A stretch of DNA of 64,000 bases. It comes from Macrostomum lignano. Taxonomy: Eukaryota. The DNA is taken from the NCBI GenBank assembly GCA_002269645.1, contig NIVC01000525.1, forward strand, positions 310,001 through 374,000. The letters run 5' to 3'. A program made the translations under genes and the position numbers. Positions 88-58,397 of this stretch are shown piece by piece. A model generated the notes under the pieces. That model saw only the letters and a list, made by a program, of their open reading frames with translations. It made no database searches and was not told where the DNA came from. Position 1 is the stretch's first letter. Every line of letters starts with the position of its first letter.

Positions 88-3000
88 CAGACTGACTTCC
101 CAAGCAACCAAATCTCACCCCCCCAAGCAGCTCGCCGTCAGCAGCAGCAGGGCGCCGAACCCGTCTCGGTGCTGCGCGGGCCCCGCAAGCCGGGCGTCGG
201 GCGCCGCGACGGCCCAATCAGCCACATCCTGGAGGACCTTGTGCACTTTAATAACAACCTGACACCGACTGCCAAGGACCCGGCTCTCTGGTGGTGCCGC
301 CCGCCGCCGCCGCCGGCTCCTGCGTCACCTTCGGTGAGCTCAGCCAGCGGGCCAACTTTTTGGCGCGCTGCCTGTTGCGCACCCTGCGCTCGCACGGCAT
401 CGACGTTTGCGGCGGCGGCGGCGGCGGCGGCGCGGCCCTCTGCGTCGTCATGCCATGCGGGCCGGACCGCCTGGCGCTGGAGCTGGCGGCGCTGAAGCTT
501 GGCCTGCCGCTACTGGGCCTGGAGCAGCCGGAGGACGGCGACTTTGCCCGAATGCTGGTCGGCCTGCAGGCAGCGTTGAAGGTGGCGAAGCCGGTGGCCC
601 TGGTGGCAGCGGCCGGTGCAGCGGCTCGCCTGCCCGAGCTTCGCAGCCTGGCGCCCGCGCTGGCCCTGGCGCTCCAGTTCGAGGATCTGGCCGAGGCCGG
701 CGAAGCTCTGGGCCTGTCCGACCGCGACCTGCAGGACGAGGAGCGGCCGGTGGTGGTGGCCGACGCGGACTCGGCCTGCTGCGCGGTGGCCATTGTGGTT
801 GAATCCATGGGCGGCCGGTTGGTCAGCCTGACCCAGGGCCAGCTGCTGGCTGCGGCCAACTGGCTGCGGGACACCCTGCCCTGGCAGTGCCACGAGGTGC
901 TGTGGATTGGCGACTCCTGCGACAGCGCCTACTGGCGGGTGCACGCACTCAGCGCCCTGCTGAACGGCATCCCGCTGCTGATGTGCCCAGGCTGCGGCCG
1001 CTGGGACGCCTGGCTGAAACTGGTCAGGGCTCAGTGAGTCTTTGGCAAGGCCTGCGGGCTGGTGTGGTTGACTGTTGATGGAGAATTACAGTTAGCTAAT
1101 GGGGGAATTACAGTTGGCTAATGTGGAATTATAAAAGCCCATGAGAAACTACAGATAGTTTAAAACAATATTTTACAGTTATTGAATGACAGTTGATGGG
1201 AATGAATGAAAGTTGATGGGGAATGAATGACAGTTGATGGGGAATAAATGACAGTTGATGGGGAATTAATGACAGTTGATGGGGAATTAATTAAAGTTGA
1301 TGGGGAATTAATGACAGTTGATGGGGAATTAATTAAAGTTGATGGGGAATGAATGACAGTTGATGGGGAATGAATGACAGTTGATGGGGAATGAATGACA
1401 GTTGATGGGGAATGAATGAAAGTTGATGGGGAATGAATGACAGTTGATGGGGAATAAATGACAGTTGATGGGGAATTAATGACAGTTGATGGGGAATTAA
1501 TTAAAGTTGATGGGGAATTAATGACAGTTAATGGGGAATGAATGACAGTTGATGGGGAACGTCAGACCATTGACGTCATTGACTGTTACCTAAGAGTGAC
1601 ATCGCCGTTCATTCTGCCATCATCTGTTTGCCCGCCATCGAAATGCAGCTACGCCACCAGGCTGGTGGCCAGCCCCAGCTTCCTGACGGATCTGCTCAGC
1701 CACACGGCCAACCGGCCGGCTGCCCGCGCCCAGCTGGCCTCGCTAGAGACCGTCCTGGTCATCGGCGAGCCGCTGTCGCCGCGCACGGCAGATGAATTCT
1801 ACAGGCAGCTGGGCGCCGGCCGCACCCTCGGCTGCCTGTACGCCAGCGTGGAGGCCTGCGGAGCCGCCGCCTACGGCATCTACCGCTGCCCGGCCGACGT
1901 GGCCGAGGTCCGACAGCTGTCCGACAGTCTGCTGGCTCTGTCCGAGGCCGCTCCAAATGTCCGGCTGGCCGTCACCGACCAGCGCGGCAGGCCGCTGCCG
2001 GCCGGGCAGCTCGGCGAGATCCGCCTGCTGCTGCTCAACGACGTCGACTCCGACGACGGCAGGGACATCGGGTCGGAGGCCGCTTGGGCGTCGGCGCTGC
2101 GGACTGGCGATCTCGGACAGGTGCGCGGGTGCCACCGGCCACCTGCTTTGCTACGGCCGGTCCGACCCGGCCGCTCTGGCCGCCGTTGAAGCCGCCGCCG
2201 GCATCGGCTGGCAACTGCTGGCGGCGCCGGGTAGCGCCGGGCGCCTATTGGCGAAGGCACCAGCGCCGGAGTGTCGGCGCTTCTCTACGGCGCCGCTGAT
2301 GCGTGAAATTTCTATGAAATTTGAGATTAAAGGTTTGGGAGAATTTTTGTAGTCTTTTTGTGACCCCGTGACCTCCTCATTTTATCGCCTGACCTCTCCA
2401 ATTTGGCGCCCTGTGACCTCAGTTTGGCGTCCTATGACCTCAGTTTGGCGTCCTATGACCTCAGTTTGGCGTCCTATGACCTCAGTTTGACCCCTGTGAC
2501 CTCATTTTGGCGCTCTGTGACCTCAGTTTGGCACCTGTGACCTCAGTTTGGCACTCTGTGACCTCAGTTTGGCGACCCTGTGACCTCAGTTTGGCTTCTT
2601 ATGACCTCAGTTTGGCACCCTGTGACCCCAGTTTGGCGCTCTGTGACCTCAGTTTGGCGCTCTGTGACCTCAGTTTGGCTCCTTGAGACATTCCTAATTT
2701 GGCGTCTCGTGACCTTTATGTGTGCTTCCTATACGTAGACTTCCAATATTACGTCATTTTTGCAACCTTCACTTGTCCAACCCACCTGCCCAGTCGGTGT
2801 CCTCGCCGACTGCTCCGCGGTGCCCCGACGCCGTCTGTGGGAGCTGCCGGATCTGCGGGCCGTGCGCCAGCCCGCCTTCGCCGATGACGACCTGGGCGGC
2901 GGCGGCAGTGACGGCGGCAAAGGCGGCAAAGAAGCTGAGGACAGCGGTGGCAGCGACGCCTGGACGGCGGCGGCTCGGCAGCTGGTGGAGGCGGCAGCGA

Positions 3001-4514
3001 CGCCCGCTGGCGGGAAGCGGCCAGCCGGAGGCGGCGGTCTCGGCCGGCTGCTGAGCTGCCCGGAGCCGCCGCCGCAGGCTGACAGTCGCTGGCCGGCCTG
3101 GGAGAGCCACCTGCTGCACACGGAGGCCACCTACCGGATGGAGGGCCCGGACTTCGCCGGCAGCGTCGGCAGCTTTCGCCTGCTGGACGTCGGCGGCTCC
3201 GGCCGGGTGGCCGCCCTGGTGGAATTCCGCGTCATCGAGACCGGCATCGCCGGAGCCGCCGCCGACGCTGGCGAGGCCGGCTTCGACTCCGCCGCCTGCG
3301 CTGCTGCCGCGAAGGCTGAGCAGCAGCAGCAGCTTTCGCCGGCCTCGGAGGAGCTCGGCTCCGTCTGCCGGGTTCTTCGAGTTCGATTTCCGAGCTTCGC
3401 TGGCGGCGGCGGCAGCGGCGGCGGCAGCGGCGGCGTCAGGGCGCTTCGCTTCCTGCGGCTGGCCGACCTGGCGGAGCACCTGCTGCTGCACTGCGCCCAG
3501 CTGCTTGGCTGCGGCCTGGCGATCCGCGTGGCGGACGATTTGGTTACTCAGGTTGGGCAGAAACTGGGACTGGGAATTCTCTCGATTGCCTGCCTATCCG
3601 CTCACGGCGTGCTTGGGGATGTGCTTGTCAGTCTCCGGGGAGCTGTCTCAAAATTCGACATTTAGATGGAATTTCCTCACCCAAAATGCCCCAACCCGAA
3701 ATTCCCCCAACCCGAAATCTCCCCAACCCGAAATCCCCCTAACTCAAAATTCCATCCAACCCGAAATTCCCCCAACCCGAAACTCCCCCAACCCGAAACT
3801 TCCCCTAACTCAAAATTCCATCCAACCCGAAACTCCCCCAACCCGAAATCCCCCTAACTCAAAATTCCATCCAACCCGAAATTCTCCCAACCCGAAACCC
3901 CCCAACCGGAAACCCCGAACCCGAAATCCCTCTAACTCAAAATTCCATCCAACCCGAAATCCCCCAACCCGAAACTCCCCCAACCTGAAACTCCCCCAAC
4001 CCGAAACTCCCCCAACCCGAAATCCCCCTAACTTAAAATTCCACCCAACCCGAAACTCCCCCAACCCGAAACTCCCCCAACCCGAAACTCCCCCAACCCG
4101 AAACTCCCCCAACCCGAAACTCCCCCAACCCGAAACTCCCCCAACCCAAAATCTCCCCAACCCGAAATTCCTCTCCCACTCAACCCGCAGACCCTGTGCC
4201 AGGAACTCGGCTACAGGGTGGCCTCAACCCGCCAGCCGGTCTCCATGGGGCCGAATTTCGACGCCGTCTCCAACGGCTGTTTCAGCAGGGCGGCCGGCAT
4301 TGGCGGCAGCCGCAGCAGCGCCAGCAGTCGCAGTAGCAGCGTTAGCAGCAGTGGCGGCGGCGGCGGCGGAGGCGGCGGCGGCGGCCGAGGACGCGGTCAG
4401 GCCTGGGAGGCGGCCACCGTGTCGGAGCTGCACGCCCAGTGCCGAAGCTCCGCCGCGGTGCTGCTAGTTCGGTCGGTGCCCCGGCTGACGTCCGAGGAGG
4501 CCTCCAGCCAGTGA
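88..4514 (+). CDS. Ebony-like NRPS-type protein (degenerate adenylation domain plus aaNAT-like amine-selecting C-terminal domain); 4 exons, 2 frameshifts (pseudogene or assembly indels)
   Basis: Exons about 88-1033, 1649-2302, 2794-3551 and 4191-4514; all three GT..AG junctions join in phase. Motifs: VTFGELSQRANFLA (A1), LAALKLG (A2), WLRDTLPW, RLVASPSFL, VLVIGEPL, LYASVE (A5), LPAGQLGEI (A6), RTGDLG (A7), GHLLCYGRSD (A8). C-terminal VTQTLCQELGYRV resembles Ebony LTQQL..V.GY. Frameshifts near 288 and 2128. The 5' end is uncertain. Confidence 0.75.
1190..1560. repeat. Intronic minisatellite, about 21-bp unit (gacagttgatggggaatgaat)
   Basis: Tandem copies visible inside intron 1 of the ebony-like gene. 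Confidence 0.95.
2360..2690. repeat. Intronic minisatellite, about 20-bp unit (tgtgacctcagtttggcgctc)
   Basis: Tandem copies inside intron 2 of the ebony-like gene. Confidence 0.95.
3665..4185. repeat. Intronic C-rich minisatellite (aacccgaaactccccc-like units)
   Basis: Tandem copies fill intron 3 up to the acceptor caacccgcag at 4190. Confidence 0.95.
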
Positions 4515-5259
4515 CTCAACGGCATCTCAGTTAATTTTTATTTATTTTATATATTTCGCTTATATTCTAGAGTTCAACAAGTTCAACTAAATGACAACTT
4601 AATAACTGAGTTATCAAGTTGTCCTTGGCTTGATGTCCTTGCTGTCTGCACACTGCTTTTTTAGAATGGAATCCATTAAAACTTCGGTTTTGCCATAGAC
4701 TATTTTCGGTCAAAGAATGTAGAGCCTAAAAAATTCTAATTTTTTAAAGCGAAGTTAAACCTTCAACTAAAAGTTTGAAGGTGTCGTCTTTCTACCATCA
4801 GCCTGTTGTTCCTGAATGCAATGCTATCAGGTTTTGAGACGCTAAAAACACCAGGTGTCATCTCGGAGTCGCCCGTTTCGATTTTATAATTAAACTATTT
4901 TAAACAGCTACGAGTAGAAAATTATGGCTATTTCGATGCTTTCATATTTCGTCTATGGCGAAAAGCTTATTTAAGCGATAATTGCTGCAACTGGTCTATC
5001 TGGTGTTTTTTAGAATGCCCAAGTGCAAGTTTTTCCCCTCTTGTTTTATTTTTTGTGGTCGCGAACGGCTGAGGACTCGTTTATGGGGTCGGAGTGTGGC
5101 CGAAACCGCTCGAGGCCATATAGACAAGTGAAATAAACGGGAATAATTTATTTATTACCCACTTGGAGCCTGGCCATGGACTACAGAAACAAACGTATTT
5201 ATTTGCAGCTTTTATTGCGCCAGGCAAAAAATGCGTTTCTATAGTCTATGGCCAGCCCC

Positions 5260-6030
5260 CAAGTGGGTAATAAGTACGTTTCTGTAGTCTATGGCCAGCC
5301 CCCAAGTAGGGTAATAAATACGTTCTGTAGTCTATAGCCGGGCCCCAAGTGGGTAATAAATACGTTCTGTAGTCTATGGCCAGCCCCCAAGTAGGGTAAT
5401 AAATACGTTCTGTAGTCTATAGCCGGGCCCCAAGTGGGTAATAAGTACGTTTCTGTAGTCTATGGCCGGGCCCCAAGTGGGTAATAATTACGTTTCTGTA
5501 GTCTATGGCCGGGCCCCAAGTGGGTAATAATTACGTTTCTGTAGTCTATGGCCGGGCCCCAAGTGGGTAATAAGTACGTTTCTGTAGTCTATGGCCGGGC
5601 CCCAAGTGGGTAATAATTACGTTTCTGTAGTCTATGGCCGGGCCCCAAGTGGGTAATAAGTACGTTTTTGTAGTCTATGGCCGGGCCCCAAGTGGGTAAT
5701 AAGTACGTTTCTGTAGTCTATGGCCGGGCCCCAAGTGGGTAATAAGTACGTTTTTGTAGTCTATGGCCGGGCCCCAAGTGGGTAATAAGTACGTTTTTGT
5801 AGTCTATGGCCAGGCCCCAAGTAGGTAATAAATACGTTTCTGTAGTCTATGGCCGGGCCCCAAGTGGGTAATAAGTACGTTTCTGTAGTCTATGGTCGGG
5901 CCCCAAGTGGGTAATAAGTACGTTTTTGTAGTCTATGGCCAGGCCCCAAGTAGGTAATAAATACGTTTCTGTAGTCTGTGGCCGGGCCCCAAGTAGGTAA
6001 TAAGTACGTTTTTGTAGTCTATGGCCGGAC
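5260..6030. repeat. 43-bp minisatellite (ctatggccgggccccaagtgggtaataagtacgtttctgtagt)
   Basis: Near-identical tandem units read directly from the sequence. Confidence 0.95.
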
Positions 6031-6395
6031 TCCAAGCCGGGAAAAATCATTTATATGCTCCTGTGTGTTTCGACTTTTTATTTTTTCATTAATTTTGTTG
6101 CTCGATAAATATCTATTCAATCAGAACGAACACGCAGGCACTGTGTTTCCCTTTCTGTTAATTTTTGTTTTTAAACTTTCGTGTTCGTTTCGCTTTTCTA
6201 TGCTGCAAATTTGAGCCATTTTTTTTACTTGAAAACTATTTGCAAACCAATTCCTATTTCCAAGTGTAGTGCCGCTGCCTCTGCCTGTCTGTTTAATAAA
6301 TTCTGCGTTCCAGAATGGTTGTTTATCTGTAAGGAAATTCCGAACTGCTTTAAAAGAAGCCAGGTTAACTTTGATGATGCAATTGAGAAATCCGT

Positions 6396-7015
6396 TGACT
6401 GACTGACTGACTGACTGACTGACTGACTGACTGACTGACTGACTGACTGACTGACTGACTGACTGACTGACTGACTGACTGACTGACTGACTGACTGACT
6501 GACTGACTGACTGACTGACTGACTGACTGACTGACTGACTGACTGACTGACTGACTGACTGACTGACTGACTGACTGACTGACTGACTGACTGACTGACT
6601 GACTGACTGACTGACTGACTGACTGACTGACTGACTGACTGACTGACTGACTGACTGACTGACTGACTGACTGACTGACTGACTGACTGACTGACTGACT
6701 GACTGACTGACTGACTGACTGACTGACTGACTGACTGACTGACTGACTGACTGACTGACTGACTGACTGACTGACTGACTGACTGACTGACTGACTGACT
6801 GACTGACTGACTGACTGACTGACTGACTGACTGACTGACTGACTGACTGACTGACTGACTGACTGACTGACTGACTGACTGACTGACTGACTGACTGACT
6901 GACTGACTGACTGACTGACTGACTGACTGACTGACTGACTGACTGACTGACTGACTGACTGACTGACTGACTGACTGACTGACTGACTGACTGACTGACT
7001 GACTGACTGACTGAC
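6396..7015. repeat. (GACT)n microsatellite, about 620 bp
   Basis: Pure tetranucleotide run. Confidence 0.99.
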
Positions 7016-8940: not shown

Positions 8941-17135
<8,195 letters not shown>

Positions 17136-21148: not shown

Positions 21149-24100
21149 ATGGGAGCTCAGATTAAAAAAGATGATAAAGCAAGCATGATCGATAAAGTAT
21201 TTGAACTCAGAGGAAAAGCAACTATTTTTCTATGTGGAGGTAAGTTTTATTATAAATTGTACATGATAAATCTAGTCTTAAAATATATAAGTTTAATGAA
21301 GGCTTAAAGTTTATAATTTATATGAAAATCCAAAAAATTGGGCCATTCCTTTTTTCCTACAAATTTGCCAGGTCCATTTTCTAATATTAGATTATATAGT
21401 GCTTGGTATAGCTTGCCTTTGCCCTAAAAAAATTCAAGATCTGTGCTTGATTTTTGCACCAGCTGGGCCTACTTGTTATTTTGGAGATGGTTGCTATTCA
21501 AGGACTTGCCATTTAGGCATGTTTGCTATTGGAGGATGTTTGCTATCTATGGGAGGGGGTATTTGCTATCTAGAGAATGCTTGCTATTGGGAGGGGAAAG
21601 GGTTTTGCTATCTAAGGGAGGGGGTTCTTGCTATCTGTTGCTATCTAGGGGATGTTTGCTATGTGGGGATGCTTGCTGTCTAGAAGATGCTTTCTATTTA
21701 GGGGGATGCTATCTTTGAGAGATGCTATCTTTGCAAAGGTTTTATTTTGTTGTGTCCTTTTATTACTCTAGAAAAAAAGAGATTTATAGCTAGCATAAGA
21801 CTGCTAAAATATACTTTGAACTACTTAGGTATGGCTGGCTGCCTAGCCAAGACAACAGTTGCACCACTGGACCGAGTCAAAATCCTTCTCCAGACGCACA
21901 ATCATGCTCACGAATCTCATGGTAAGACCTGTCTTTGAAAATGTTTTATTGACTAAAGATTAATACTGTATAGAGAAATCAAAGTTTGCTTTGGTAGCAA
22001 ACTTAATTGGCAATGACCTGCTCTCATAGTGCATTTGTATTCTCACTATTCTCAGGCATTTTCGGCACTCTTCGCCACATCTGGTCAGTTGAGGGCATCG
22101 CTGGTTTCTATCGAAGCAATGGAGCTCAAATGATACGTATATTCCCCTACTCGGCTATACAATTTCTATCATTCGATGTGTACAATAATGTAAGCTTCTG
22201 GGGGACTGCTTGTGTTTCTTAGATTCATCTTCAGGCCTTGACGCTCTACTGTTGACCAATTTCAGAGTTTGTCAGCCTCGCTAGGCGAAGGCAATCTGAC
22301 GCGACTGATAAGCGGGTCAATGGCTGGTGAGCGTTTAAGAAATCAACTTCAAACTGTTTGTGTGCATAGATGGGTTAATACAGGTAGTTGAATGATTGCG
22401 ACAGAGCAGGTACAGACTGAAAATTCACGGGCACTAAAGTACGTCGCACTTAGCCAGACAGTAAGACGGTGAGATAATGGATAAGACACTGCGAGAGACA
22501 AATAACGTAAAGACACTCTGTCACTGAAGACACTCTGTCACTGAAGACACTCTGTCACTGAAGACACTCTGTCACTGAAGACACTCTGTCACTGAAGACA
22601 CTCTGTCACTGAAGACACTCTGTCACTGAAGACACTCTGTCACTGAAGACACTCTGTCACTGAAGACACTCTGTCACTGAAGACACTCTGTCACTGAAGA
22701 CACTCTGTCACTAAAGACACTTCAGACACTAAAGATAATTCAGACACTAAAGACACTCACAAACTAAAGATAAAGACAATAAAGACAGTCAGTCACCAAA
22801 AATACTCAGTCACTAATGACACCCAGGACACTAAGACATGCAGACAGACACCCAGGACACTAAGACATGCAGACAGACACCCAGGACACTAAGACATGCA
22901 GACAGACACCAAGGGCACTAAGACATGCAGACAGACACCAAGGGCACTAAGACATGCAGACAGACACCCAGGACACTAAGGCATGCAGACAGACACCAGG
23001 GCACTAAGACATGCAGACAGACACCAAGGGCACTAAGACATGCAGACAGACACCAAGGGCACTAAGACATGAAGACAGACACCAAGGGCACTAAGACATG
23101 CAGACAGACACCCAGGACACTAAGACATGCAGACAGACACCAAGGGCACTAAGACATGCAGACAGGCACCAATGACACTAAGACACACAGACAGACACCA
23201 AGGGCACTAAGACATGCAGACAGGCACCAAGGACACTAAGACACACAGACAGACACCAAGGGCACTAAGACATGCAGACAGACACCAAGGACACTAAGAC
23301 ATGCAGACAGACACCCAGGACACTAAGACACACAGACAGACACCAAGGGCACTAAGACATGCAGACAGACACCAAGGACACTAAGACATGCAGACAGACA
23401 CCAAGGACACTAAGACACACAGACAGACACCAAGGGCACTAAGACATGCAGACAGACACCCAGGACACTAAGACACACAGACAGACACCCAGGACACTAA
23501 GACACACAGACAGACACCCAGGACACTAAGACATGCAGACAGACACCCAGGACACTAAGACACACAGACAGACACCCAGGACACTAAGACATGCAGACAG
23601 ACACCCAGGACACTAAGACATGCAGACAGACACCCAGGACACTAAGACATGCAGACAGACACCCAGGACACTAAGACATGCAGACAGACGCCCAGGACAC
23701 TAAGACATGCAGACAGACACCAAGACCCACAGCTCCTAATACACCGCAGGCATGACGGCAGTGTCGCTCACTTATCCACTGGACGTTGTTCGAACTCGAC
23801 TGGCTTATCAGTCGGCCGGCTGCGCCGAGCATCCGCATAGCAACTATTCGGGCATCGCCGACTGTCTGCGCCACCTGCGCACCCAGCGCGCCCTGTTCGC
23901 CGGCCTGGCGCCCAGTCTGCTTGGCATGGCGCCTTACGCCGGCGTGAGCTTCTGCGCCTTCCACTGGCTTCAGAGGCAGGCCGTGGAGCGCTGGCCGGGT
24001 CTGTTCGCCGTGAGGGACGACGACGAGTCGCCTGCTCGACTGTGCACCTGGGCTCGACCCCTGATTGGTGGCCTGGCCGGAGCTGCCGCCCAGACAGTCA

Positions 24101-24645
24101 GCTACCCACTGGACTGCGCCCGGCGATACATGCAGGTCTGGCACTGACTGTGTGTGCGCGGGCACTTGCACTGTGTGTGCGCGGGCACTCGCACTGACTG
24201 TGTGTGCGCGGGCACTGGCACTGACTTTGTGTGCGCGGGCACTGGCACTGACTGTGTGTGTGCGGGCACTGGCACTGACTGGTGTGTGTGTGTGCGGGCA
24301 CTGGCACTGACTGCGTGTGTGCGGGCACTGGCACTGACTGTGTGTGCGCGGGCACTGGCACTGACTGTGTGTGTGCTGTCACTGTCACTCCATAACAAGG
24401 GCACTGTCACTCCATAACAAGGACACTGTCACTCTCAATTGCAGGTGGCGGGCGCTCCTGGCCGTTTCAGCTTGGCTGAAGTCCCGGCAGCGGGAGCCGC
24501 GGCCACGCTGTCGCAGCTGTACAGCCGCTACGGTGTGGCAGCCGGGCTGTACCGCGGCCTGTCGCTGAACTACGTGAGGGTGGTGCCGACCGCTGGCGTG
24601 TCATTTGCAGCCTACGAGACTTTGCGACAGGCGTTCGGGGTCTGA
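21149..24645 (+). CDS. SLC25A16: Mitochondrial carrier, Graves disease carrier protein / CoA transporter-like, about 321 aa, 6 exons
   Basis: Exons 21149-21239, 21829-21921, 22056-22189, 22266-22326, 23750-24135 and 24445-24645; in phase, 966 nt. Three Px(D/E)xx(K/R) signatures (APLDRVK, YPLDVVR, YPLDCAR). AKTTVAPLDRVKILLQ.HN, NGAQMIRIFPY and LGMAPYAGVSF match SLC25A16. The start could instead be the ATG at 21185. Confidence 0.88.
22510..22715. repeat. 17-bp intronic minisatellite (aagacactctgtcactg)
   Basis: Tandem array in SLC25A16 intron 4. Confidence 0.96.
22820..23725. repeat. 29-bp intronic minisatellite (cacccaggacactaagacatgcagacaga)
   Basis: Tandem array in SLC25A16 intron 4. Confidence 0.96.
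24140..24430. repeat. Intronic minisatellite (ggcactgactgtgtgtgcgcg)
   Basis: Begins immediately after the donor of intron 5. Confidence 0.93.
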
Positions 24646-30959: not shown

Positions 30960-32849
30960 TCAGATCAGCGTCTCGCGCGCGATCGGCGACTGCGAACTGT
31001 CGCCATAGTAACGGCGCACAATGCGCGGCGGCCGGTAGGCGCCAAAATCGGCAACGCCGGCGTCACCGCTGCCGGTGGTGGCGCCGTCGTTGAAATCGTC
31101 GCCGCAGAAGCTGCTCTCGGCGTAGCGCGGGCCCAGCCGCCTGGCCCGTCGGCCGGAGTTCGAGCATCTCTCGCAGCCGTTGCAGCCGACCACCAGCCGC
31201 GCCGGCCCAGTGCTGTAGGGCGGGGGCGGCTGCCGCTGATCGGCGAGCAGATGAGGTCGGGGAGGCTGCCGAGCCAGCAGTGGCTCCTGCAGGCACAGCG
31301 GCGGCGGCGGCGGCGGATACGGCAGCGCCTTGGAGGCGACGCCAGCGGCGGCGAACTGCGGAAGCAGCGGCGATGGCGGAGTTCGCGACCTCTCCGGCTG
31401 CTGCTGCTGCTGCCATTGCCGGAGCACCGGCGAGCTGCCTTGGTTCAACTGACGGTGGCGTTGGCATCGCTGACGATGTCGACGCCTCCTCTGCTCCCGG
31501 TGGCACCGTCGGCGGCTGGCGCTGCGCGCCTCCTCCCCGGCGCTCTCCTCGTCGACATCCTCGCTGGACCGGCCCGACTGGTACTCCATCTCCAGCTCCT
31601 CCGGCGCTGCCTCGTCGTCCTCCTCGAACTCATCTTGGTCTTCTTCTTTCGACTCGTTCCCGTCTCTCTCGTCTTCCTTCTTAGTGCCGCCGGCGCTCCG
31701 TCGACGCCGACGCCCGACGTCGCAATAGTCGACGCGCGCCCGCTGCAGGCTGGCCCGCTGCTTCTGGCTGGCGATGCGCAGCAGGATGACGTCGCACAGC
31801 ATGGAGGACAGGCCGAACAGGGCCAGGCCGCTGCCCAGGTTCATCGACAGTCTGTAGAAATCGAACCGGCCGCCCTCGCCGCTGACCGTGACGAAGATCT
31901 TGATGCCGTAGGCGTGCACCAGCATCCGACGGTCCTGGCCCTCGCTCCTGTAGTTGTAGGCGTACTGCACGGAGAAGCCCTCAATGTCCGTGCCTTTGCC
32001 GATGTCCAGCTCGCGGAAGTGGTACTTGGGCAGGCAGTGCTCCTCCGGCAGGTCGAAGTTGCACTGCCAGGAAATGTCGATGCCGAACGCGCCGCCGATT
32101 TTGTAGACCTCCTCGCTGGTGGTGCCAGAATAGGCGAGGATGTCGCCGAGGCGGAACACTGGGCAGTAGGTGAGGTTTGGGTGCGCCTTGTCGTACAGGC
32201 AGGTGTTCAGGTACTCGCTGGTCATCCAGTCCAGGATGTTGCGCCGTTTCTTATCGAATGCTCGAAAATCGACGCTGTTTTTTAGCTGGACGGTGAAGTT
32301 CCTGGCACGGGTGAGCACCGAGCCGACTGGCAGGTTGAAGGCGTCCTGACTGGGCGCCGGGCACCAGCCGTAGCTGATGCAGGTTCTCGTGTCCGGGCTG
32401 CACCGGCCCGTGCGCCGGCCCTGACTGCTGATGCTGCCGGCCAGACAATCGCCGTCCTGATGGCAGTGTCCGACCGACTCCGGACACTCGCTCATGGCCT
32501 GCTTGTCGGTCACCCGAGCATTTGTTGTAATGAAAATGGCGCCATTCATGATCGGTGGTATGATGTAATCGGCCGAGTCCCACACTCTGGCGCCGTAGTC
32601 CGGATCTCCCGACCTGTTCACAAAGTCCAGGCCCTTCACTTTGAACACCACGCCGCCCTCCGGCGTCTCTATAACCTGGTAGCCTTTCTTGTGCCAGATA
32701 ATGTAGAACAGGAAGTAGACAATGACAGACAGCTGCACGCTGCGGTAGAACAGGCCGAACTTGACGCTGCGAATCACCACCACTTTCTGCAGGCGGTACT
32801 CGAAGAACCCAGCCAGCATGCGGCTGAAGAACGATCTCAGGGAGCACAT
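30960..32849 (-). CDS. P2RX: P2X purinoceptor-family ion channel, intronless, 629 aa, with a non-canonical ATP site
   Basis: FFEY N-terminus, TM1 (LFYRSVQLSVIVYFLFYIIWHKKGYQ), FKVKG, WDSADY, GWCP, NFTV, YCPVFRLGDI, GGAFGIDISWQCNFD, all 10 extracellular Cys, and TM2 (MNLGSGLALFG...LCD). ATG at 32849. Confidence 0.95.
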   Translation of the reverse strand: MCSLRSFFSRMLAGFFEYRLQKVVVIRSVKFGLFYRSVQLSVIVYFLFYIIWHKKGYQVIETPEGGVVFKVKGLDFVNRSGDPDYGARVWDSADYIIPPIMNGAIFITTNARVTDKQAMSECPESVGHCHQDGDCLAGSISSQGRRTGRCSPDTRTCISYGWCPAPSQDAFNLPVGSVLTRARNFTVQLKNSVDFRAFDKKRRNILDWMTSEYLNTCLYDKAHPNLTYCPVFRLGDILAYSGTTSEEVYKIGGAFGIDISWQCNFDLPEEHCLPKYHFRELDIGKGTDIEGFSVQYAYNYRSEGQDRRMLVHAYGIKIFVTVSGEGGRFDFYRLSMNLGSGLALFGLSSMLCDVILLRIASQKQRASLQRARVDYCDVGRRRRRSAGGTKKEDERDGNESKEEDQDEFEEDDEAAPEELEMEYQSGRSSEDVDEESAGEEARSASRRRCHREQRRRRHRQRCQRHRQLNQGSSPVLRQWQQQQQPERSRTPPSPLLPQFAAAGVASKALPYPPPPPPLCLQEPLLARQPPRPHLLADQRQPPPPYSTGPARLVVGCNGCERCSNSGRRARRLGPRYAESSFCGDDFNDGATTGSGDAGVADFGAYRPPRIVRRYYGDSSQSPIARETLI

Positions 32850-34689
32850 CCTGGCCGGACTCTGGGAACCTGCCAACCGACTCTAGGAAAACCGGCCTTC
32901 CCTCCCGAGTAGAGCGTCTACCTTAAAGCGTCTACTGTCGCGTGGACGCGGAGGGAAGCTGCATGGAACTCGCGGATAGTGATTGGACAAGCAGCGCTGG
33001 CAACCCCCCTTCAAGCCCGTCCCCCCGGTCTCCTCCCTTCCATTCTCTCCAGAACCTTTTTCTCCAACTAGCGGCAGCTTCTCCCCATTGCCAATAAAAT
33101 TCAACACACTGGCTGCATGAGGCCCGATGGTGACAGGGACAGCAGAGGAGAGCGATATTGCCTGAGCAGGGAGGGAGGGGAGGAACGGGCGAGGGGCGCT
33201 CGACTACAGAGAAGAAGCATGAAGGCCTCGGAGACAAGGGTAAAGGCGTTTGGCAGAGGCTAAAAGGGGAAGAAAGGGCCTTTCGGGCTTGCGGCGCCAG
33301 CCCGCGGGGCAAGGGCGCTGGAGATTAAAAAAATGACGGAAAAGGAAAGAAGGGAGCAGAGAGAGCTGGGCGGAGAGATTGGAGATCTGAAAGACGAGTA
33401 TGGGAGGAACCGGCTAGAGGAAGAGAAAGTTCAGCCGATTTCGACCCGATATTTCCCCCTGTCTAATAAAGCTAGGGATGCCCCATCGAATCGCGGGCAA
33501 ATCCCAGTCCGCCTGATCCCGACTCACAGGCTCACTCTGTTTCTGCTCCGCCGATCATCTTGGCTAGAGCCCGCGCCTCTGGGGAGCGCGCTCAACCCCC
33601 TGGCAGGCGATATAGGCTTCATCATCCATCCCGCTGATCAGCCTCCCCCTCCTCTGATCCCTGCCAGTATCTCTTCTACAGGGAGACTTATACTGAGGAG
33701 CTGATCCCATGCGAAGGGGAGAAGACAGGCAGACCGACGGCTAGATGACGAGAACCCCTGCCCCGCGGCCTGAGACAATACACGCACATAGACGGCAAGT
33801 TTACGAATGCGGCTACCATAGGACAGCTTCCAGATCGAATTAAACAAAAGCTCGATAGAGAAAGAGAGAAAGAATGGTTTAATAAAACCATGGGCTGCGT
33901 AGGCGGAGGCAAGGCGAAAGAAGTGTGGGAGTGAGGCATAGGCCAGCTAAAATCGACTGCTGCACGGCAATAACACGAACTATAAGCCCTGGAAACTCAG
34001 AACTTGGAGCAAAGTGGGCAAGCACTCCAAGGACAGGCAGATCTGAGCAGGGGGGGGGGGGGGTTCAGCAGGAAAGAGGCGGAGAAAGAGGAAGTATACT
34101 TGGCAGCAACGTGCAACCTGCATCTGTGTGTTGGGGTTGCTGATCGATGAATAGGCTGCGTTCCCCATTTTTCCTCAAAAAAGGAGGGCCTGAGGGAGAC
34201 ACTGGCTGCTGCTCCCCCAGTTTCCACCCAACCACTCCCCCGCTCCATCCCCTAGGGTTGGGTGGTGTATGATGCGAGAAAGAAAACTGGGGATTTTTCG
34301 CCCCCAATTCCCCTTTCCGATCCTGTTTCGTCAAGCCCAGCTGGCTGCATAGCGAGGCCGAGAATGCAGCGCGTGAGCAATGGGCTTGGCAGCTCAATAG
34401 ACAAAAACATAATCGGGAGAGACAAGTCTATCGTCAGGTGCAGACTCAGAGACAGAGGCAGCTCGCTCTAATGCACTGAAATGTTTGCATATATAACATT
34501 AATAGATGTTTGGATTCTATCGTAGAATCTCAATTCAAATTTCGGCAGGTACATTTTCCCCGGAGTACTGCTCCCAGCTGAAAATAATTCCCGCGCAGGC
34601 GAATCGATATCGCGCGACTAAATTCGCTAATTTCATTTCTTAGAAGTGTGCAGCACCAATTAGATAGCTGCCTATCAGACTGCCTAATC

Positions 34690-36103: not shown

Positions 36104-38029
36104 TTAAGCCTCCATCGCGTTGGCATCGGCCTCGGAGTACTTGCCCTTCTCGGCGCCTCGGGCCCTGCCGGCGGCTTTGCGGTCCAACAGGCCGCGCCTG
36201 TCCCGGTCCAGCTTGAGCTTCGTGATCACCACCTGAGGCGGAATTCATAGGTGAGGGTCTTTGAAGTGAAGACTGCGGCTCTTGAAAGTTTGGTTATGGC
36301 GATTCTTAATGGGGCTGGGGGCGATTCCTAATGGGGTCGGGGCGATTCTTAATGGGGTTGGGGCGATTCTTAATGGGGTTGGGGCGATTCCTAATGGGGT
36401 TGGGGCGATTCTTAATGGGGTTGGGGCGATTCCTAATGGGGTTGGGGCAATTCCTAATGGGGTTGAGGGCGATTATTAATGGGGTTGGGGGCGATTCCTA
36501 ATGGGGTTGAGGGCGACTCATAATGGGGTTGGGGGCGATTCCTAATGGGGCTGGGCGATTCCTAATGAGGGTTTGGGGGCGATTTTTAATAGGTATTTTG
36601 CAATGGGGTTCTTAAAATGTTTTTGAGCAGCATGTAAAAGTCAAAAATTGAAAGTCAATAGTTCAAGTCTATTAGTGGGAGAGAAAAACCAGCAGTCGAG
36701 TCGAGAACACGCTAACCATACTAAATAGCAGGAAGCTTAGTCTGCCTGATGAGTAAAATAGTACTCAAATGTCTGGCCTTACAAATTATCAAAAGACTGG
36801 TTTCCAATCATTTTTGCTTCGCATGAGAGCAAGAGACGAAAAAAAGTTGCTTTTATATTAAAGAATTTCAGACGATGCAGTCAGGACAGGTGCATGCGTG
36901 TGTAGAAGCTAATATGGCAAAGGTGTGCGTTTCTAGATCCGAAAACAGCGTCATTGGAGGGGTGTTCTTCAAGCCGAAGGGAGCCGAGCCTAAGATGGGT
37001 GTCTGTGGAGCCTAAGATGGGTGTCTGTGGAGCCTAATATGGGTGTCTGTGGAGCCTAAGATGGGTGTCTGTGGAGCCTAAGATGGGTGTCTGTGGAGCC
37101 TAAGATGGGTGTCTGTGGAGCCTAAGATGGGTGTCTGTGGAGCCTAAGATGGGTGTCTGTGGAACCTAAGATGGGTGTCTGTGGAGCCTAAGATGGGTAT
37201 CTGTGGAGCCTAAGATGGGTGTCTGTGGAGCCTAAGATGGGTGTCTGTGGAGCCTAAGATGGGTGTCTGTGGAGCCTAAGATGGGTGTCTGTGGAGCCTA
37301 AGATGGGTATCTGTGGAGCCTTAGATGGGTGTCTGTGGAGCCTAAGATGGGTGTCTGTGGAGCCTAAGATGGGTGTCTGTGGAGCCTAAGATGGGTGTCT
37401 GTGGAGCCTAAGATGGGTGTCCGGGAAGCCTAAGATGGGTGTTTGTGAAGGCTAAGTTGGGTGTCTGTAAAGGCTAAGATGGGTGTTTGTGGAGCCTAAG
37501 ATGGGTGTCTGTGGAGCCTAAGATAGGTGTCCGGGAAGCCTAAGATGTGTTAGTGGAGCCTAAGATGGGTGTCCAGGCTAAGATGGTTGTCTGTAAAGGC
37601 TAAGATGGGTGTCCGGGAAGCCTAAATGCCTTACATCTTTTTTCGGTGAACTTGAAGCGAAATGGTGAACAGTAATAGAGGGGTCACGTCTAAAAAAGCA
37701 GAACTTCCGTCCATTATTACCTTGCTAGGATGCAGGTTAACATAGACGGTAGCACCGTTAGCCTTCTCCCTTTGAATCCGTTCCACGTGGATGACATACT
37801 TGGAACGATAGACTGCCACCACTTTGCCAGTCTGGGTGCCCTTGTGGTGACCCCGGACAAGTTGCACCTCGTCGTCTTTGCGGATGGGCATAGAGCGGAC
37901 ATTGTACTTGGTGCGCAGCTCCTTGGACAGCGGAGCCGACATCAGCTTGCGTCGAATGTGCGACGGCGCATTGAAATAGCGCTGGCGATTCTTCCGCTTG
38001 GAGCTGGTGACGCTCTTGTTGAACTTCAT
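36104..38029 (-). CDS. RPL26: 60S ribosomal protein L26 (uL24), 145 aa, 2 coding exons
   Basis: Exons 38029-37721 ([39 protein letters not shown]...HPSK) and 36232-36104 ([13 protein letters not shown]...MEA*), joined in phase 0. Confidence 0.98.
36295..36590. repeat. 21-bp intronic minisatellite (gggcgattcctaatggggttg)
   Basis: In the RPL26 intron. Confidence 0.93.
36988..37625. repeat. 22-bp intronic minisatellite (cctaagatgggtgtctgtggag)
   Basis: In the RPL26 intron. Confidence 0.96.
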
Positions 38030-38389
38030 CTCTGCTGCTGCAATAGTTAACAATTGCGATTTGATTATTGTTGAATCCGTTAACTCACATCAGTTCGCGA
38101 TCTCCACGCAGCAGACAATACAACGATTTTCCCCCTCAAACTCAAAAGTGAATCAGTTCCCACTGTTAATAATTACGCAACTGATACTGCCATTTGACTG
38201 CCGGGTAGTGTTGTTTGGTGGTATAAGGAATATGATTTCATCCTTTGACTTTGGACCTGTGATTCTAAAATATAATCGAGGTTTTTGTATACTACAAGTA
38301 CATACTTTACGAGTATAAAAGATGCATAGCCATGAATTTTTATTAGGGATGGGGGCGTCATGGGGTAGGGGTGCCACCTCGGAGGCGTC

Positions 38390-49092: not shown

Positions 49093-50110
49093 TTAGCTAT
49101 TCATGACTTCATATATTTTAGCTACACCAGTGAGCTCTTTTCTGACTCTTTTTTCATTAGTAGCATATCCTATCTTGTGTATTTGATTGCTATTTAAGAG
49201 GTATTGACAGAAGTATTTTTTCCTGATCTCTTCAGTTTGTGGACATTCGGTCAAGTAGTGTAGAATGTCAGAACCATTTCGCGCTCCACACATTTTACAT
49301 GGTTCTTGAGAAAAAAAGTTGGGTGTAATCTCGCATTTCAGTTTTAGGAGGGTTGTTAAGAATTTTTTGTTTCTAAATGTACATGGAAAGAAATCTGAAA
49401 GGTCGGGCCTGCAGATTTTTTTGTAGAGATAGGCGTTTTTGTAGAGTTTAATATGTTGCTGATTCTCTAGCTTTTGGCTAAGTTCTCTTTCTCTGTGTAT
49501 CTTGAGGTGCTTTTTCACTAGGTATTTCTCGTTATTAAAGCTTTGGGAAAGTTTATCTTCAGTTAGTGCTTTTAGGTCTATACTTTCTAGTTTCTTTAGT
49601 ACATTCATTTTCCATGGATTTTTTTGGCCGGTGTTTGAGTAGAAAATTTCTAGAGTCGTTTGGCAGAGTTTTTTGTGTCTAATCTTCAGCCAGTAGATGA
49701 GGTAGGTTTTAGCGATTCGTTGAGAGATTGGAGTAAGCTCAAGTTCTGATGATACCACACTGTTGCTAGCAAATTTTGGTAGATTGAGGAGATATTTGTA
49801 GAATTTCAGCTGAATATTATCAATAGCTTTTGTATCAGACATGGTAGCCAGAGGGCCCCAGAGCTCACAACCGTAAGTGATAACGGGGGTAACAAGCGCG
49901 TCAAATAGTCTGCGAATGAGTGTGATGTCTAGGGACGTATTCTTTACCCTATGGAGTAGGGAAAACATGGCTGTATATCCCTGCTTAGTTTGGTGTTCAA
50001 TACATTTTTTAAAGCTGTTTTTTGGTTCAAAAATAATTCCCAGGTATTTAAATTCATTTACTTCCTCTATTTCTTGGTTGTCGTAGTATATTTTTGTAGC
50101 AATGCTTTCT
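49093..50110 (-). mobile_element. 5'-truncated non-LTR retrotransposon: C-terminal RT/thumb and CCHC region (CR1/L2-group-like)
   Basis: In-frame EIEEVNEFKYLG, LFDALVTPVITYGCELWG, IQLKFYKYLLNL, ELELTP and CKMC...HYLTEC. No YADD motif upstream. Confidence 0.85.
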
Positions 50111-52692: not shown

Positions 52693-55600
52693 TCAGAATC
52701 CGGACACGGACTGCAGACGATGGCGCTGCTGCTGATTGGTGCCGTTGCCAAGCGGGCAGTACTTGATGGTGTGCGCCTTGCTGCCCGAGACGCCACAAAT
52801 TGGGCACACGTACCTGGATTTTTTCAGGCAGGGACAAAATAGTAAAGATTATATTATTCTGAATAAATTTGTGCTCTTGTCACTAAAAAGTCGGTCATAT
52901 TTTATCTTCTCTACTGTTAGTAGCTTAAATGAAGTGATTATATACCGGTATATCTAGAGGCTGGTGCAGGATTTTTTTAGGCTAGGTCAGCGGTTTTACA
53001 GGGGTCCTGACTTGTGTATAAATTTTTAATCACAGCAGGCAGACCGAGCTCACCTGAACAGCACTGGGCAGGTAACATTGCCGTTGATGTCGGCCAGTCG
53101 GTGGCTGGTGTACACGTGGAACGGTTCCTGATTCTGTCGGCAGAATGCGCACAATTCGATGCCAATTTCGCGTTTCTTCTGATGATGCATCTTCAGCTTG
53201 GCCAGGAAGCTGAGCAGGGTAGCTTTGTCAACTAGGATCCGGTTCGGGCCAAGCTGATTCGGCCTGGTTTTCATGTTGCTAGGCAACGAGGCGCAACAGC
53301 TGACCGAGGCGATCCACTTGTCAATCTCGTGGCCGATGCTCAGTTTAGGCTGCTGATGCTGATGATGCACAGCTGGTTGAGCTGCAGGCGTGCCGATTGG
53401 CATTGGCAGGTGCTGCTGCTGGTTGCCACGCTGTCTCAGACTCAGCGATGCAGCTGCAGGGCGATTCTGATGACGAAGAATGCCAACGGATTCGTCGGTT
53501 GTGCGAGACTCGTCCGTCAGTGTTGAGCACAGCAGATGTTGACGGTGCACCTCAGCCTCTCCTGTGTTTTGTATTTTGAGATGAAATAGTTTTTTACGAG
53601 TATTGCGTTTTGTTGCAACTACATGTAGCAGCTCCCTGGGATTCCTCAGTGGGTCAATATAGCTCTCCCTGGGATTCCTCAGTGGGTCAATATAGCTCCC
53701 TGGGATTCCTCAGTGGGTCAATATAGCTCCCTGGGATTCCTCAGTGGGTCAATATAGCTCTCCCTGGGATTCCTCAGTGGGTCAATATAGCTCCCTGGGA
53801 TTCCTCAGTGGGTCAATATAGCTCCCTGGGATTCCTCAGTGGGTCAATATAGCTCCCTGGGATTCCTCAGTGGGTCAATATAGCTCCCTGGGATTCCTCA
53901 GTGGGTCAATATAGCTCCCTGGGATTCCTCAGTGGGTCAATATAGCTCTCCCTGGGATTCCTCAGTGGGTCAATATAGCTCCCTGGGATTCCTCAGTGGG
54001 TCAATATAGCTCCCTGGGATTCCTCAGTGGGTCAATATAGCTCCCTGGGATTCCTCAGTGGGTCAATATAGCTCCCTGGGATTCCTCAGTGGGTCAATAT
54101 AGCTCCCTGGGATTCCTCAGTGGGTCAATATAGCTCCCTGGGATTCCTCAGTGGGTCAATATAGCTCCCTGGGATTCCTCAGTGGGTCAATATAGCTCCC
54201 TGGATATGGGATTCCTCAGTGGGTCAATATAGCTCCCTGGGATTCCTCAGTGGGTCAATAGCTCCCTGGGATTCCTCAGTGGGTCAATATAGCTCCCTGG
54301 GATTCCTCAGTGGGTCAATAGCTCCCTGGGATTCATCAGTGGGTCAATATAGCTCTCCCTGGGATTCCTCAGTGGGTCAATAGCTCCCTGGGATTCATCA
54401 GTGGGTCAATATAGCTCCCTGGGATTCCTCAGTGGGTCAATATAGCTCCCTGGGATTCCTCAGTGGGTCAATATAGCTCCCTGGGATTCCTCAGTGGGTC
54501 AATATAGCTCTCCCTGGGATTCCTCAGTGGGTCAATATAGCTCCCTGGGATTCCTCAGTGGGTCAATATAGCTCCCTGGGATTCCTCAGTGGGTCAATAT
54601 AGCTCCCTGGGATTCCTCAGTGGGTCAATATAGCTCCCTGGATATGGGATTCCTCAGTGGGTCAATATAGCTCCCTGGGATTCCTCAGTGGGTCAATAGC
54701 TCCCTGGGATTCCTCAGTGGGTCAATATAGCTCCCTGGGATTCCTCAGTGGGTCAATAGCTCCCTGGGATTCCTCAGTGGGTCAATATAGCTCTCCCTGG
54801 GATTCCTCAGTGGGTCAATAGCTCCCTGGGATTCATCAGTGGGTCAATATAGCTCCCTGGGATTCCTCAGTGGGTCAATATAGCTCCCTGGGATTCCTCA
54901 GTGGGTCAATATAGCTCCCTGGGATTCCTCAGTGGGTCAATATAGCTCCCTGGGATTCCTCAGTGGGTCAATATAGCTCCCTGGGATTCCTCAGTGGGTC
55001 AATATAGCTCCCTGGATATGGGATTCCTCAGTGGGTCAATATAGCTCCCTGGGATTCCTCAGTGGGTCAATAGCTCCCTGGGATTCCTCAGTGGGTCAAT
55101 ATAGCTCCCTGGGATTCCTCAGTGGGTCAATAGCTCCCTGGGATTCATCAGTGGGTCAATATAGCTCTCCCTGGGATTCCTCAGTGGGTCAATAGCTCCC
55201 TGGGATTCATCAGTGGGTCAATATAGCTCCCTGGGATTCCTCAGTGGGTCAATATTGTTCCCTGGGATTCCTCAGTGGGTCAATATAGCTCCCTGGAATT
55301 CCTCAGTGGGTCAATATAGCTCCCTGGGATTCCTCAGTGGGTCAATGCATGTATAGCTCCCTGGGAGGCTGGGCTCGAGACTTTGGGAGAATTAGTAACC
55401 GTGTAGAAACGAGACATCTAGATTCAGAATCAAAGAAATCGCCTTAAACAGAATAAATAGCTACAGAGTGTAAGCTGTGACTGTGACCCTCTGATCCTGG
55501 TAACAGCCGCGGACTGAGAAATAAATCCTCAATAGGAGCGAATACAGAGATTGAAATAGGGGGGAAATACATGAAATAGGATAGGATAGGTGCCATAAGA

Positions 55601-56478: not shown

Positions 56479-57534
56479 CAGAACCGGTGTAGAGAAACGG
56501 GGTGCTGTCTAGCTAGCAATTTGAGGTGGTTGTCGCCGGGCTTGCTTCGGCGGTTCCCTCTCCGCGGGGGTTCGTCTGGGCGTCGGGTGTTAGTTTGTAG
56601 CGCAGGAAACAAGCTTTAGATAGATAACCATTAATTTGTATTAAAATCGTAAAACGAGAGCCAGTGCCTATCAGTTATGTTATCTCTAAACGAATAAGTT
56701 ACTCGTATTGCAATTCAATAAGTAAGGGAGCTTTGGGGATGGCAGCAAGCAACCAATGTTGGCATAGTAATTGCGTCTGTCTGATAATAAACTACGACCG
56801 TAATCGCGTTGCCAGCAGCAGCACCGAGTGAAGCAATAAAACTTATTTGAATCATTAGATACAAGCTTATTTAACTATTTTATGTAAAACTTTTTTTAAA
56901 CTCACAAAGTTTGTAAGGTATGAGAAAATGATAATTGATAATATGCGGTACCTTTTTTAAAGCTTTTTTTAGAATGAAGCGGATTTGGGAAAGAAAAGTG
57001 ACGTGATTAGAAGGGGAGAGTGAAAGTGGAGTTGAGAGAGAAACAAGAGAATTTCGGGTATGAGATGAGAGTAAAAGAGAAGGGCGAAGAAGTTAATACA
57101 CAAGCCAAAATAATCGATCTTATCACCATTATTTCTAAACCTCTGCTAATTGCATTCCTTCCTGCCGGCAAAGAGCCCGAGGGTAGCTTAATTTAGCAAT
57201 TCTACACTGCTGATATTTGATTTATGGCTAAATAAGGGGAGCACGAAAATTTCCCGCAGGAATTTTTCCCGCCGAGCTATCCCCGCACGAGATTCTCCCG
57301 CAGCGAGTTTTTATCACAGCGAGAGTTTCCCGCAGGAAATTTTCCCGTCGAGATTTTCCTGCCGAGATTTTACCACCGAGATTTTCCCACACGAATTTTC
57401 CCCGCACAGACTTTTTCCAGCAGAAAGATTTTCCCGCAAGAAATTTCTCTTGATTGCCTGTTTACCTTAAGAAAGAACTTATAAAAAGGAAAGCTATTAG
57501 CAGAGACGCGATTTTCTTTGATAAATTCGACACA

Positions 57535-58397
<863 letters not shown>

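Follow-up and report, generated by a model that had tools for sequence, protein, structure and literature searches.

Ebony-type nonribosomal peptide synthetases (NRPSs) make beta-alanyl-amines. The described members, Ebony, Sm-NRPS, and Smed-NRPS, are composed of an adenylation (A) domain, a carrier domain, and an AANAT-like C-terminal domain (CTD). In ANL enzymology, adenylation needs the lysine of motif A10 and the P-loop, and a serine carries the pantetheine arm. Pseudoenzymes, such as the pseudokinases, are catalytically dead homologs that are kept by selection, and degenerate A domains occur inside large NRPSs. Macrostomum lignano is an early-branching flatworm without vitellaria and is the main transgenic flatworm model. 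In schistosomes and planarians, female reproductive development is controlled by beta-alanyl-tryptamine (PMC10723454). Here we describe a five-exon adenylation (AMP-binding) gene of M. lignano that lies at the beginning of a 64,000-nucleotide stretch of DNA (the window; positions 310,001 to 374,000 of contig NIVC01000525.1, forward strand).

The Macrostomum protein resembles the Ebony/Sm-NRPS type in its length (909 amino acids [aa] versus 750 to 950 aa), in the order of its segments, and in the retained A1, RTGD, and GRSD motifs, with a weak, collinear similarity at the C-terminal alpha/beta unit, and its best nonself matches (the "ebony-like" protein of Tubulanus and proteins of Owenia and Darwinula) are of this type. 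It differs from these proteins in that it lacks the P-loop, the A4 aspartate, the A5 threonine, the A8 hairpin, the A10 lysine, and the carrier serine. In addition, its carrier domain is truncated, its AMP-binding score is 71 bits versus 155 to 247 bits in the relatives, and its CTD is not recognizable by profile or by structure prediction. Since the P-loop, the substrate aspartate, the catalytic lysine, and the carrier serine are lost, the protein should be able neither to adenylate or carry beta-alanine nor to make beta-alanyl-amines by the NRPS route. We consider it fairly probable that the gene in the window is a copy of a degenerate descendant of a single-module NRPS, most likely of the Ebony/Sm-NRPS type, which is catalytically dead and is kept by selection, in the duplicate described below, for a noncatalytic role.

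The gene in the window and its intact duplicate

The window matches NIVC01000525.1 (assembly GCA_002269645.1, Mlig_3_7) identically, and this contig carries the deposited gene BOX15_Mlig024094g1 (product P0002). The sequence is eukaryotic; the exons of the gene are 71% GC, and its introns are full of tandem repeats. When the conceptual product of the gene was used in a protein search, only two entries, both of M. lignano, were returned. It matched BOX15_Mlig000265g3 (product P0001, 909 aa) with 97% identity over 98% of its length. The second match was P0002 (540 aa), which starts with MNSTG at window position 1792 in the wrong frame because of an indel at 2125. P0002 joins the right frame only after 2125, and its first 110 residues are a wrong-frame translation of an adenylation exon. 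This database entry (window 1792 to 4514) misrepresents the gene as a truncated product of 540 aa, whereas the duplicate yields the full product of 909 aa. P0001 is encoded on NIVC01000441.1, which is collinear with NIVC01000525.1 at 96% for at least 9 kb, and a nuclear-receptor gene lies upstream at both loci. Judged by this collinearity, the two loci are syntenic duplicates, which is what one would expect in the DV1 line. The assembly of this line contains 180 Mb of blocks duplicated at an identity of at least 95% (PMC5730564).

The exon bounds of P0001 were solved exactly on the NIVC01000441.1 sequence L001 (6001 to 6082, 6961 to 7864, 8481 to 9163, 9605 to 10350, and 11422 to 11736; all introns GT-AG), and the boundary sequences were then located in the window. 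Exon 1 consists of 27 codons and lies on the same contig, 2.6 kb upstream of the window (window coordinates -2675 to -2594), with its ATG and GT donor intact. Exons 2 to 5 occupy positions 131 to 4514 of the forward strand, as do all features of the gene given below. The earlier note on this DNA, made from the sequence alone, had started the gene at position 88, which is within intron 1; exon 2 (131 to 1033) begins after the acceptor cag/CT (slashes mark splice junctions). The N-terminal half of the adenylation core comes from this exon, which carries a 1-nucleotide (nt) deletion at 296 and ends at the donor CA/GTGAGT, both of its boundaries being as in the duplicate. It is followed by an intron (1034 to 1648, GTGAGT...CAG) that consists largely of a 21-mer repeated 18 times in tandem (1183 to 1559). 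Exon 3 (1649 to 2332) encodes the equivalents of motifs A5 to A9 and carries a 1-nt insertion at 2125, and the intron after it (2333 to 2793, GTTTGG...CAG) contains 13 copies of a 21-mer (2402 to 2679). Exon 4 (2794 to 3551) encodes the A10 equivalent, a low-complexity stretch at the place of the carrier domain, and the start of a possible CTD remnant. The last intron (3552 to 4190, GTTGGG...CAG) contains 30 copies of a 16-mer (3689 to 4171) and is 432 nt shorter than that of the duplicate. Exon 5 (4191 to 4514) encodes the end of the possible CTD remnant (TLCQELGYRVAS, 4191 to 4226), a Ser/Gly run, and a C-terminal strand, AAVLLVRSV, before the stop codon TGA (4512 to 4514). The splice sites had been called intact, and indeed all introns are GT-AG with boundaries as in the duplicate.

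Each intron is dominated by a tandem array of its own; that of intron 1 has a unit of roughly 35 nt (L005, 5616 to 8340). The copy numbers of the arrays differ between the duplicates, and the lengths of intron 4 (639 nt in the window copy versus 1071 nt in the duplicate) and of intron 1 (about 2.7 kb versus 878 nt) differ with them. Simple and tandem repeats make up 15% of the M. lignano genome (PMC5730564).

At the end of exon 3, PLMREISMKFEIKVGVLAD is the reading of both deposited models (P0001 and P0002), which share the junction 2332/GT, giving PLMREISMKFEIK/VGVLAD. The last 30 nt of this exon (2303 to 2332, REISMKFEIK) are 26% GC within a gene that is 71% GC. The exon 2/3 junction proposed in the earlier note lies instead at 2302/GT. 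Both donors are in frame, and 2302/GT is possibly an alternative 5' splice site or else a matter of annotation choice.

In a three-frame translation, the Ebony-like reading runs in frame 1 to about 295, in frame 3 from 297 to 1033 and from 1649 to 2124, in frame 1 from 2126 to 2332, and in frame 3 from 2794 to 3551 and from 4191 to 4514. The switches near 296 and 2125 are caused by single-base indels relative to the intact duplicate. At 295 to 297, where the duplicate has TGCCCGCCC, the window has TGCC-GCCC and is short of one C, so that the reading passes from frame 1 into frame 3; the intact copy has ALWWCPPAAAAGSC here. At 2124 to 2126, an extra G in the window (GTGCGCGGG versus GTGCCGGG) shifts it from frame 3 to frame 1, and the intact copy reads GQVPGATGH. 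The exons had been described as long and open, with a spliced product that crosses both switches unremarked; splicing those exons without frame correction gives a product full of stops. Besides these two single-base indels, the copies differ in 2.65 kb of exon by 17 substitutions and by in-frame indels of 12 and 9 nt, both of which lie in GGC repeats.

Because of the two frameshifts, the window copy must either have been disabled recently or have been assembled wrongly. In the first case, the frameshifts would be real and would have disabled this copy after a chromosome or genome duplication in DV1; in the second, they would be errors of the PacBio-based assembly. The depositors' pipeline called only the 540-aa open reading frame (ORF) of P0002, with its wrong-frame start, at the window locus; the usual fate after duplication is the loss of one duplicate; and the DV1 line has extra large chromosomes (PMC5730564). 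Together with the two single-base indels, which fall within 2.65 kb of exon, these observations fit a true, recently inactivated duplicate, that is, a young pseudogene beside a single functional locus, and we place this explanation just short of even. However, the sequence around each indel is a GC-rich run, and the assembly, made by Canu from PacBio data, was polished with short reads multi-mapping between 97%-identical copies (PMC5730564). Moreover, the window copy retains every splice site, the whole of exon 1 including the ATG, and the stop codon, and the remaining exon indels are multiples of three.

Catalytic motifs and predicted domains

The motifs of P0001 were examined in an alignment with 11 Ebony-type relatives (alignment 1) and in an alignment of 55 A domains (alignment 2), which gave the same register. 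P0001 keeps 24 of the 71 columns (34%) that do not vary among the 11 relatives; each relative keeps 88 to 100% of the columns that are invariant in the others.

The retained motifs are those of the scaffold. TFGEL is kept in A1 (324 to 356, VTFGELSQRAN), LRTGDLGQV is kept in A7 (2097 to 2123), including the invariant G482 and D483, and GRSD is kept in A8 (2149 to 2175). The 18-residue hairpin that follows GRSD in the relatives (QVKIRGxRVNLxEIE) is deleted (alignment 1 columns 530 to 552). A2 and A6 are present as remnants: A2 (492 to 524) keeps LKLG, with AYVPLD replaced by LPLLGLE and a 6-residue insertion, and A6 (2004 to 2042) keeps GQLGEI and has lost SGxNV. The Ebony-like scaffold listed in the earlier note is thus borne out for A1, the TGD of A7, and the GRSD of A8 and in part for A2 and A6, but the amine-selecting C-terminal region on the same list could not be demonstrated (E 0.14, hhalign P 0.035, predicted local distance difference test [pLDDT] score 45; see below).

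The motifs of catalysis have been replaced. At the equivalent of the A3 P-loop (780 to 830, CAVAIVVESMGGRLVSL), YTSGSTGxPKG has become AIVVESMGGRL, which changes eight columns that are invariant in the relatives (T>I, S>V, G>V, T>S, G>M, P>G, K>R, and G>L). At the A4 equivalent (912 to 935), LLFVDS has become CDSAYW; FVDS is thereby lost to SAYW, and the aspartate that contacts the substrate amine is a tyrosine (D>Y295). The A5 equivalent (1827 to 1865, LGCLYASVEACGA) is partly lost, NYYGSTE having become CLYASVE (N>C, G>A, and T>V) with the tyrosine and the glutamate kept. The A3 and A5 readings agree with those given previously and are present in both the sequence and the alignments. At the A10 equivalent (2811 to 2837), TGKIDR has become SAVPRR (2814 to 2831), with alanine in place of the catalytic lysine (K>A565) and proline in place of the aspartate (D>P567). 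The loss of this lysine had been recognized but had been located at PLMLGVLAD, across what the earlier note counted as the exon 2/3 junction, whereas the motif lies within exon 4; no lysine occurs at that spacing in either splice variant (2302 or 2332 donor). The place of the carrier domain, or peptidyl carrier protein (2874 to 3059), is occupied by low-complexity sequence rich in Gly, Asp, and Ala, in which FFxIGGNS is replaced by PA...GGGG, the serine by glycine (S>G638), and about 40 residues are missing (alignment 1 columns 690 to 760). The reported absence of a carrier GGxS therefore holds, with no PP-binding match and glycine in the serine column.

The Pfam AMP-binding family (PF00501) matched with 68 to 71 bits (E 9e-20; cutoff, 29.9), confined to profile positions 180 to 372 of 384 and beginning only past the A3 equivalent. 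Pfam returned no PP-binding (PF00550) or AMP-binding_C (PF13193) match and no match of any kind in the last 360 residues; a PP-binding match is present in all of the relatives. The best NCBIfam model was that for NRPS amino acid adenylation (43.6 bits versus 19 bits for the next). In an AlphaFold2 (AF2) model made from a shallow alignment, pLDDT was 70 to 90 for residues of about 40 to 500 and below 50 from residue 501 to residue 909; it was also below 50 at residues 250 to 255, the former P-loop. When the core was searched with Foldseek, it matched the NRPS A domains of Txo1, FscH, and McyG (E 1e-23 to 1e-21).

The C-terminal part was compared with the tail of Ebony-type proteins. A possible Ebony-type CTD remnant begins at 3435 to 3551 (VRALRFLRLADLAEHLLLHCAQLLGCGLAIRVADDLVTQ), where the match is weak and collinear. 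The Ebony-tail profile gave an E value of 0.14 in hmmsearch (Z=1, a one-sequence search), and hhalign gave a score of 20.2 (P 0.035) that exceeded those of all 30 shuffles; both matches fall at the collinear place LADLAEHLLLHCAQLLGCGLAIRVADDLVTQTLCQELGY. In an AF2 model of the C-terminal part alone (269 residues), mean pLDDT was 45, and the sole stretch above 60 was the possible CTD remnant (63 to 71). For a model of such low confidence, Foldseek found no meaningful fold match, and when the C-terminal sequence was searched against the PDB, only low-complexity matches were returned.

Constraint on the gene family

The substitutions between the window copy and the duplicate were mostly synonymous. 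Twelve were synonymous and five nonsynonymous (dS 0.017, dN 0.0026, dN/dS 0.15; binomial P 2e-4), and the synonymous excess persisted under several mutation models (P 3e-4 to 8e-3), including models in which kappa was raised to as much as 8 and the CpG rate 10-fold (P 0.008). The excess was specific to the annotated frame, where 12 of 17 changes were synonymous; for the remaining forward frames the count was 2 of 17. In the C-terminal exons the fraction was 6 of 7, and exon 1 added one further change of each kind. The frame of P0001 is intact: its 909 codons include no stop, against 16 predicted from composition (P ~1e-7); the other five frames of this copy contain 9 to 20 stops. The low dN/dS and the open 909-codon frame therefore indicate that the gene family is constrained rather than drifting. 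A lack of expression together with a dN/dS near 1 had been named in advance as the sign of an ordinary pseudogene; the family stands at 0.15 between the duplicates, and its gene models belong to an annotation based on RNA-seq (PMC5730564).

A product of this kind is plausibly a pseudoenzyme. Like the known ones, P0001 would be an enzyme homolog whose catalytic residues are replaced, with an open frame under purifying selection and an inactivity that is read from its residues. Purifying selection on a family of presumably dead enzymes makes a noncatalytic role the most likely one. The proposal that a dead Ebony-like enzyme has been retained thus agrees with the Ebony-type affinity of the closest nonself relatives, with the motif erosion, and with the dN/dS of the family, but it does not extend to the window copy as assembled, which is frameshifted.

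Ancestry and alternative explanations

HMMER, run exhaustively over 1.84 billion representatives, found no close homolog beyond the two M. lignano entries; the next match had an E value of 3e-17 and 26% identity. The leading distant matches are proteins of 750 to 880 aa with an A-T-CTD architecture, which contain AMP-binding (155 to 247 bits) and PP-binding domains and a tail of about 200 residues. Named relatives come from Owenia fusiformis, Darwinula stevensoni, and Tubulanus polymorphus, and the best nonself relatives include annelids and nemerteans. RefSeq names two of the relatives ebony-like, the T. polymorphus protein being a [quoted passage not shown] By a hidden Markov model (HMM) of the Ebony tail, this tail is present in 18 of 63 matches and in 8 of the 12 best. 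A best match to a non-Ebony AMP-binding family had been proposed as the result that would speak against an Ebony-like gene; the best phmmer matches are of the Ebony type. Ebony ancestry, although not proven, is the most likely reading of the origin of this adenylation gene to judge from these matches.

Two other groups of proteins are comparable. The A domains of bacterial NRPSs of the KTSxxFVDS type share the fold (Txo1, FscH, and McyG) and give a high HMM score, but the Macrostomum gene belongs to an animal, has introns and eroded catalytic motifs, and encodes neither condensation nor thioesterase domains. AASDH (ACSF4-U26), the other animal NRPS-like protein that activates beta-alanine, likewise has an NRPS-type A domain in an animal; the Macrostomum protein differs from it in having no PQQ-repeat architecture and no carrier domain. 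An origin from AASDH was rejected, since no AASDH-type architecture (PQQ repeats) was present among 65 matches or in the protein itself.

Under the interpretation that we favor, the ancestor would have been a single-module NRPS with an adenylation domain, a carrier domain, and an amine-selecting CTD. Its descendant would have lost the residues for adenylation and thioester carriage and kept a foldable N-terminal core scaffold, about 450 residues long. Beyond this scaffold would come a C-terminal subdomain of reduced length, then low-complexity sequence where the carrier domain used to be, and at most a remnant of the CTD. The intact 909-codon duplicate on NIVC01000441.1 would be maintained by purifying selection, and its role would probably be binding or scaffolding through the retained core.

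Several results weigh against this interpretation. The A region scored 138 bits against a non-Ebony HMM and 99 bits against an Ebony-type HMM, bootstrapped neighbor joining grouped the long-branch query with Ebony-type sequences in only 3%, and the homology of the C-terminal domain is not significant. The selection test is based on 17 substitutions between two very recent copies, without an outgroup, and one of these copies carries the two frameshifts. Finally, M. lignano gene models derive from RNA-seq assemblies (PMC5730564), and transcription of the gene is inferred solely from this annotation method; neither gene ID was found in the supplements searched for expression.

The two HMM scores, the 3% bootstrap value, and the nonsignificant match to the Ebony-CTD profile would be expected if the gene were not derived from Ebony at all but came from a different adenylation gene of the NRPS type, such as one for a bacterial-type A domain that was separately acquired or inherited, with a domain order that resembles that of Ebony by coincidence. 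The non-Ebony HMM, however, was built from a biased set: its sequences had been preselected for similarity to the query, and the set is larger, mostly bacterial, and rich in domains of the KTSxxFVDS type. An Ebony-type CTD occurs in 8 of the 12 best phmmer matches, and the weak CTD match of the Macrostomum protein lies at exactly the collinear place. The gene has four spliceosomal introns and resides in a flatworm genome, and flatworm Sm-NRPS-like sequences cluster with Ebony (PMC10531068). We therefore regard a non-Ebony origin as improbable.

It is very unlikely that the whole family is an ordinary decaying pseudogene whose ORF and apparent constraint are by-products of 71% GC, for although GC-rich DNA produces long ORFs in all frames, the protein is rich in Ala, Leu, Gly, and Arg with long low-complexity runs, and no fold was detected in its C-terminal 400 residues, this explanation is already disfavored by the absence of stops from the P0001 frame alone, by the dN/dS and the synonymous changes of the C-terminal exons, and by the conservation of all intron splice sites in both copies. 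Equally little credence can be given to a protein that is still an active adenylate-forming enzyme with noncanonical residues, since the ribose-binding aspartate of A7 (RTGD), the Arg and Asp of A8 (GRSD), the Tyr and Glu of A5, and a core fold predicted with good confidence have to be set against the joint loss of the P-loop, the A4 aspartate, the A5 threonine, the A8 hairpin, the A10 lysine, and the carrier serine.

Search for an active Ebony-type enzyme in M. lignano

One role suggested for a catalytically dead paralog was the regulation of an active Ebony. No canonical Ebony-type gene of M. lignano was found in the window or among the matches, the word-indexed profile searches being too uninformative for a direct test. 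A search with a nine-protein Ebony profile was swamped by bacterial NRPSs and did not return its own members, and a CTD-only profile returned one unnamed fragment. The possibility of a second Ebony-like gene within the window was rejected, as tblastn finds this locus alone. In a survey of animal NRPSs, Table S5 gives Sm-NRPS-like matches for the other flatworm genomes and none for Macrostomum, even though the genomes listed there include both M. lignano assemblies; this is an absence from a table and not a test (PMC10531068). A literature search for the gene IDs, and for Macrostomum together with NRPS or ebony, found nothing specific.

A bolder proposal is that M. lignano has no working Ebony/Sm-NRPS enzyme and that its sole ortholog has turned into a noncatalytic protein kept by selection. 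We hold this to be doubtful on present evidence. If it were true, the beta-alanyl-tryptamine signal for female development would be absent from the Macrostomum lineage or would be made otherwise, and the protein would be the first described case of a stand-alone NRPS pseudoenzyme from an animal; no stand-alone dead animal Ebony-type protein or adenylation-domain pseudoenzyme was found in the literature searched. A sole relative that is dead and yet conserved would also raise the questions of whether Macrostomum uses the signal and of what an adenylation scaffold that does not adenylate can do.

Other features of the window

Several other genes were recognized in the window. A P2X ATP-gated channel is encoded by a single-exon ORF of 638 aa (30960 to 32876, reverse strand; Pfam, 331 bits) with a long low-complexity C-terminal tail, and its GC3 of 83% is similar to that of the Ebony-like gene. 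Exons of a CDKL-like protein kinase with Pkinase matches lie at 15100 to 17100 (reverse strand). The intron that separates them is one long tandem array, which reads through as fake ORFs of 500 to 600 aa in three frames. A Nanos-type zinc finger (Pfam zf-nanos, 41 bits) ends an ORF at 53050 to 53550 (reverse strand), which is a candidate germline gene. Ribosomal protein L26 is encoded by an ORF at 37631 to 38053 (reverse strand; 101 bits), and a mitochondrial carrier protein is represented by an exon at 23752 to 24147 (forward strand; 70 bits).

Large simple arrays occur at 5234 to 6036 (18.7 copies of a 43-mer), at 6396 to 7015 (a perfectly uniform array of 155 TGAC units), and at 57370 to 58432 (long arrays of the CTGT/CCTG type that create fake ORFs on both strands). 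An AT-rich ORF of 291 aa (49093 to 49968, reverse strand) has no Pfam match, lies in a stretch of 28 to 36% GC, and is possibly part of a mobile element.

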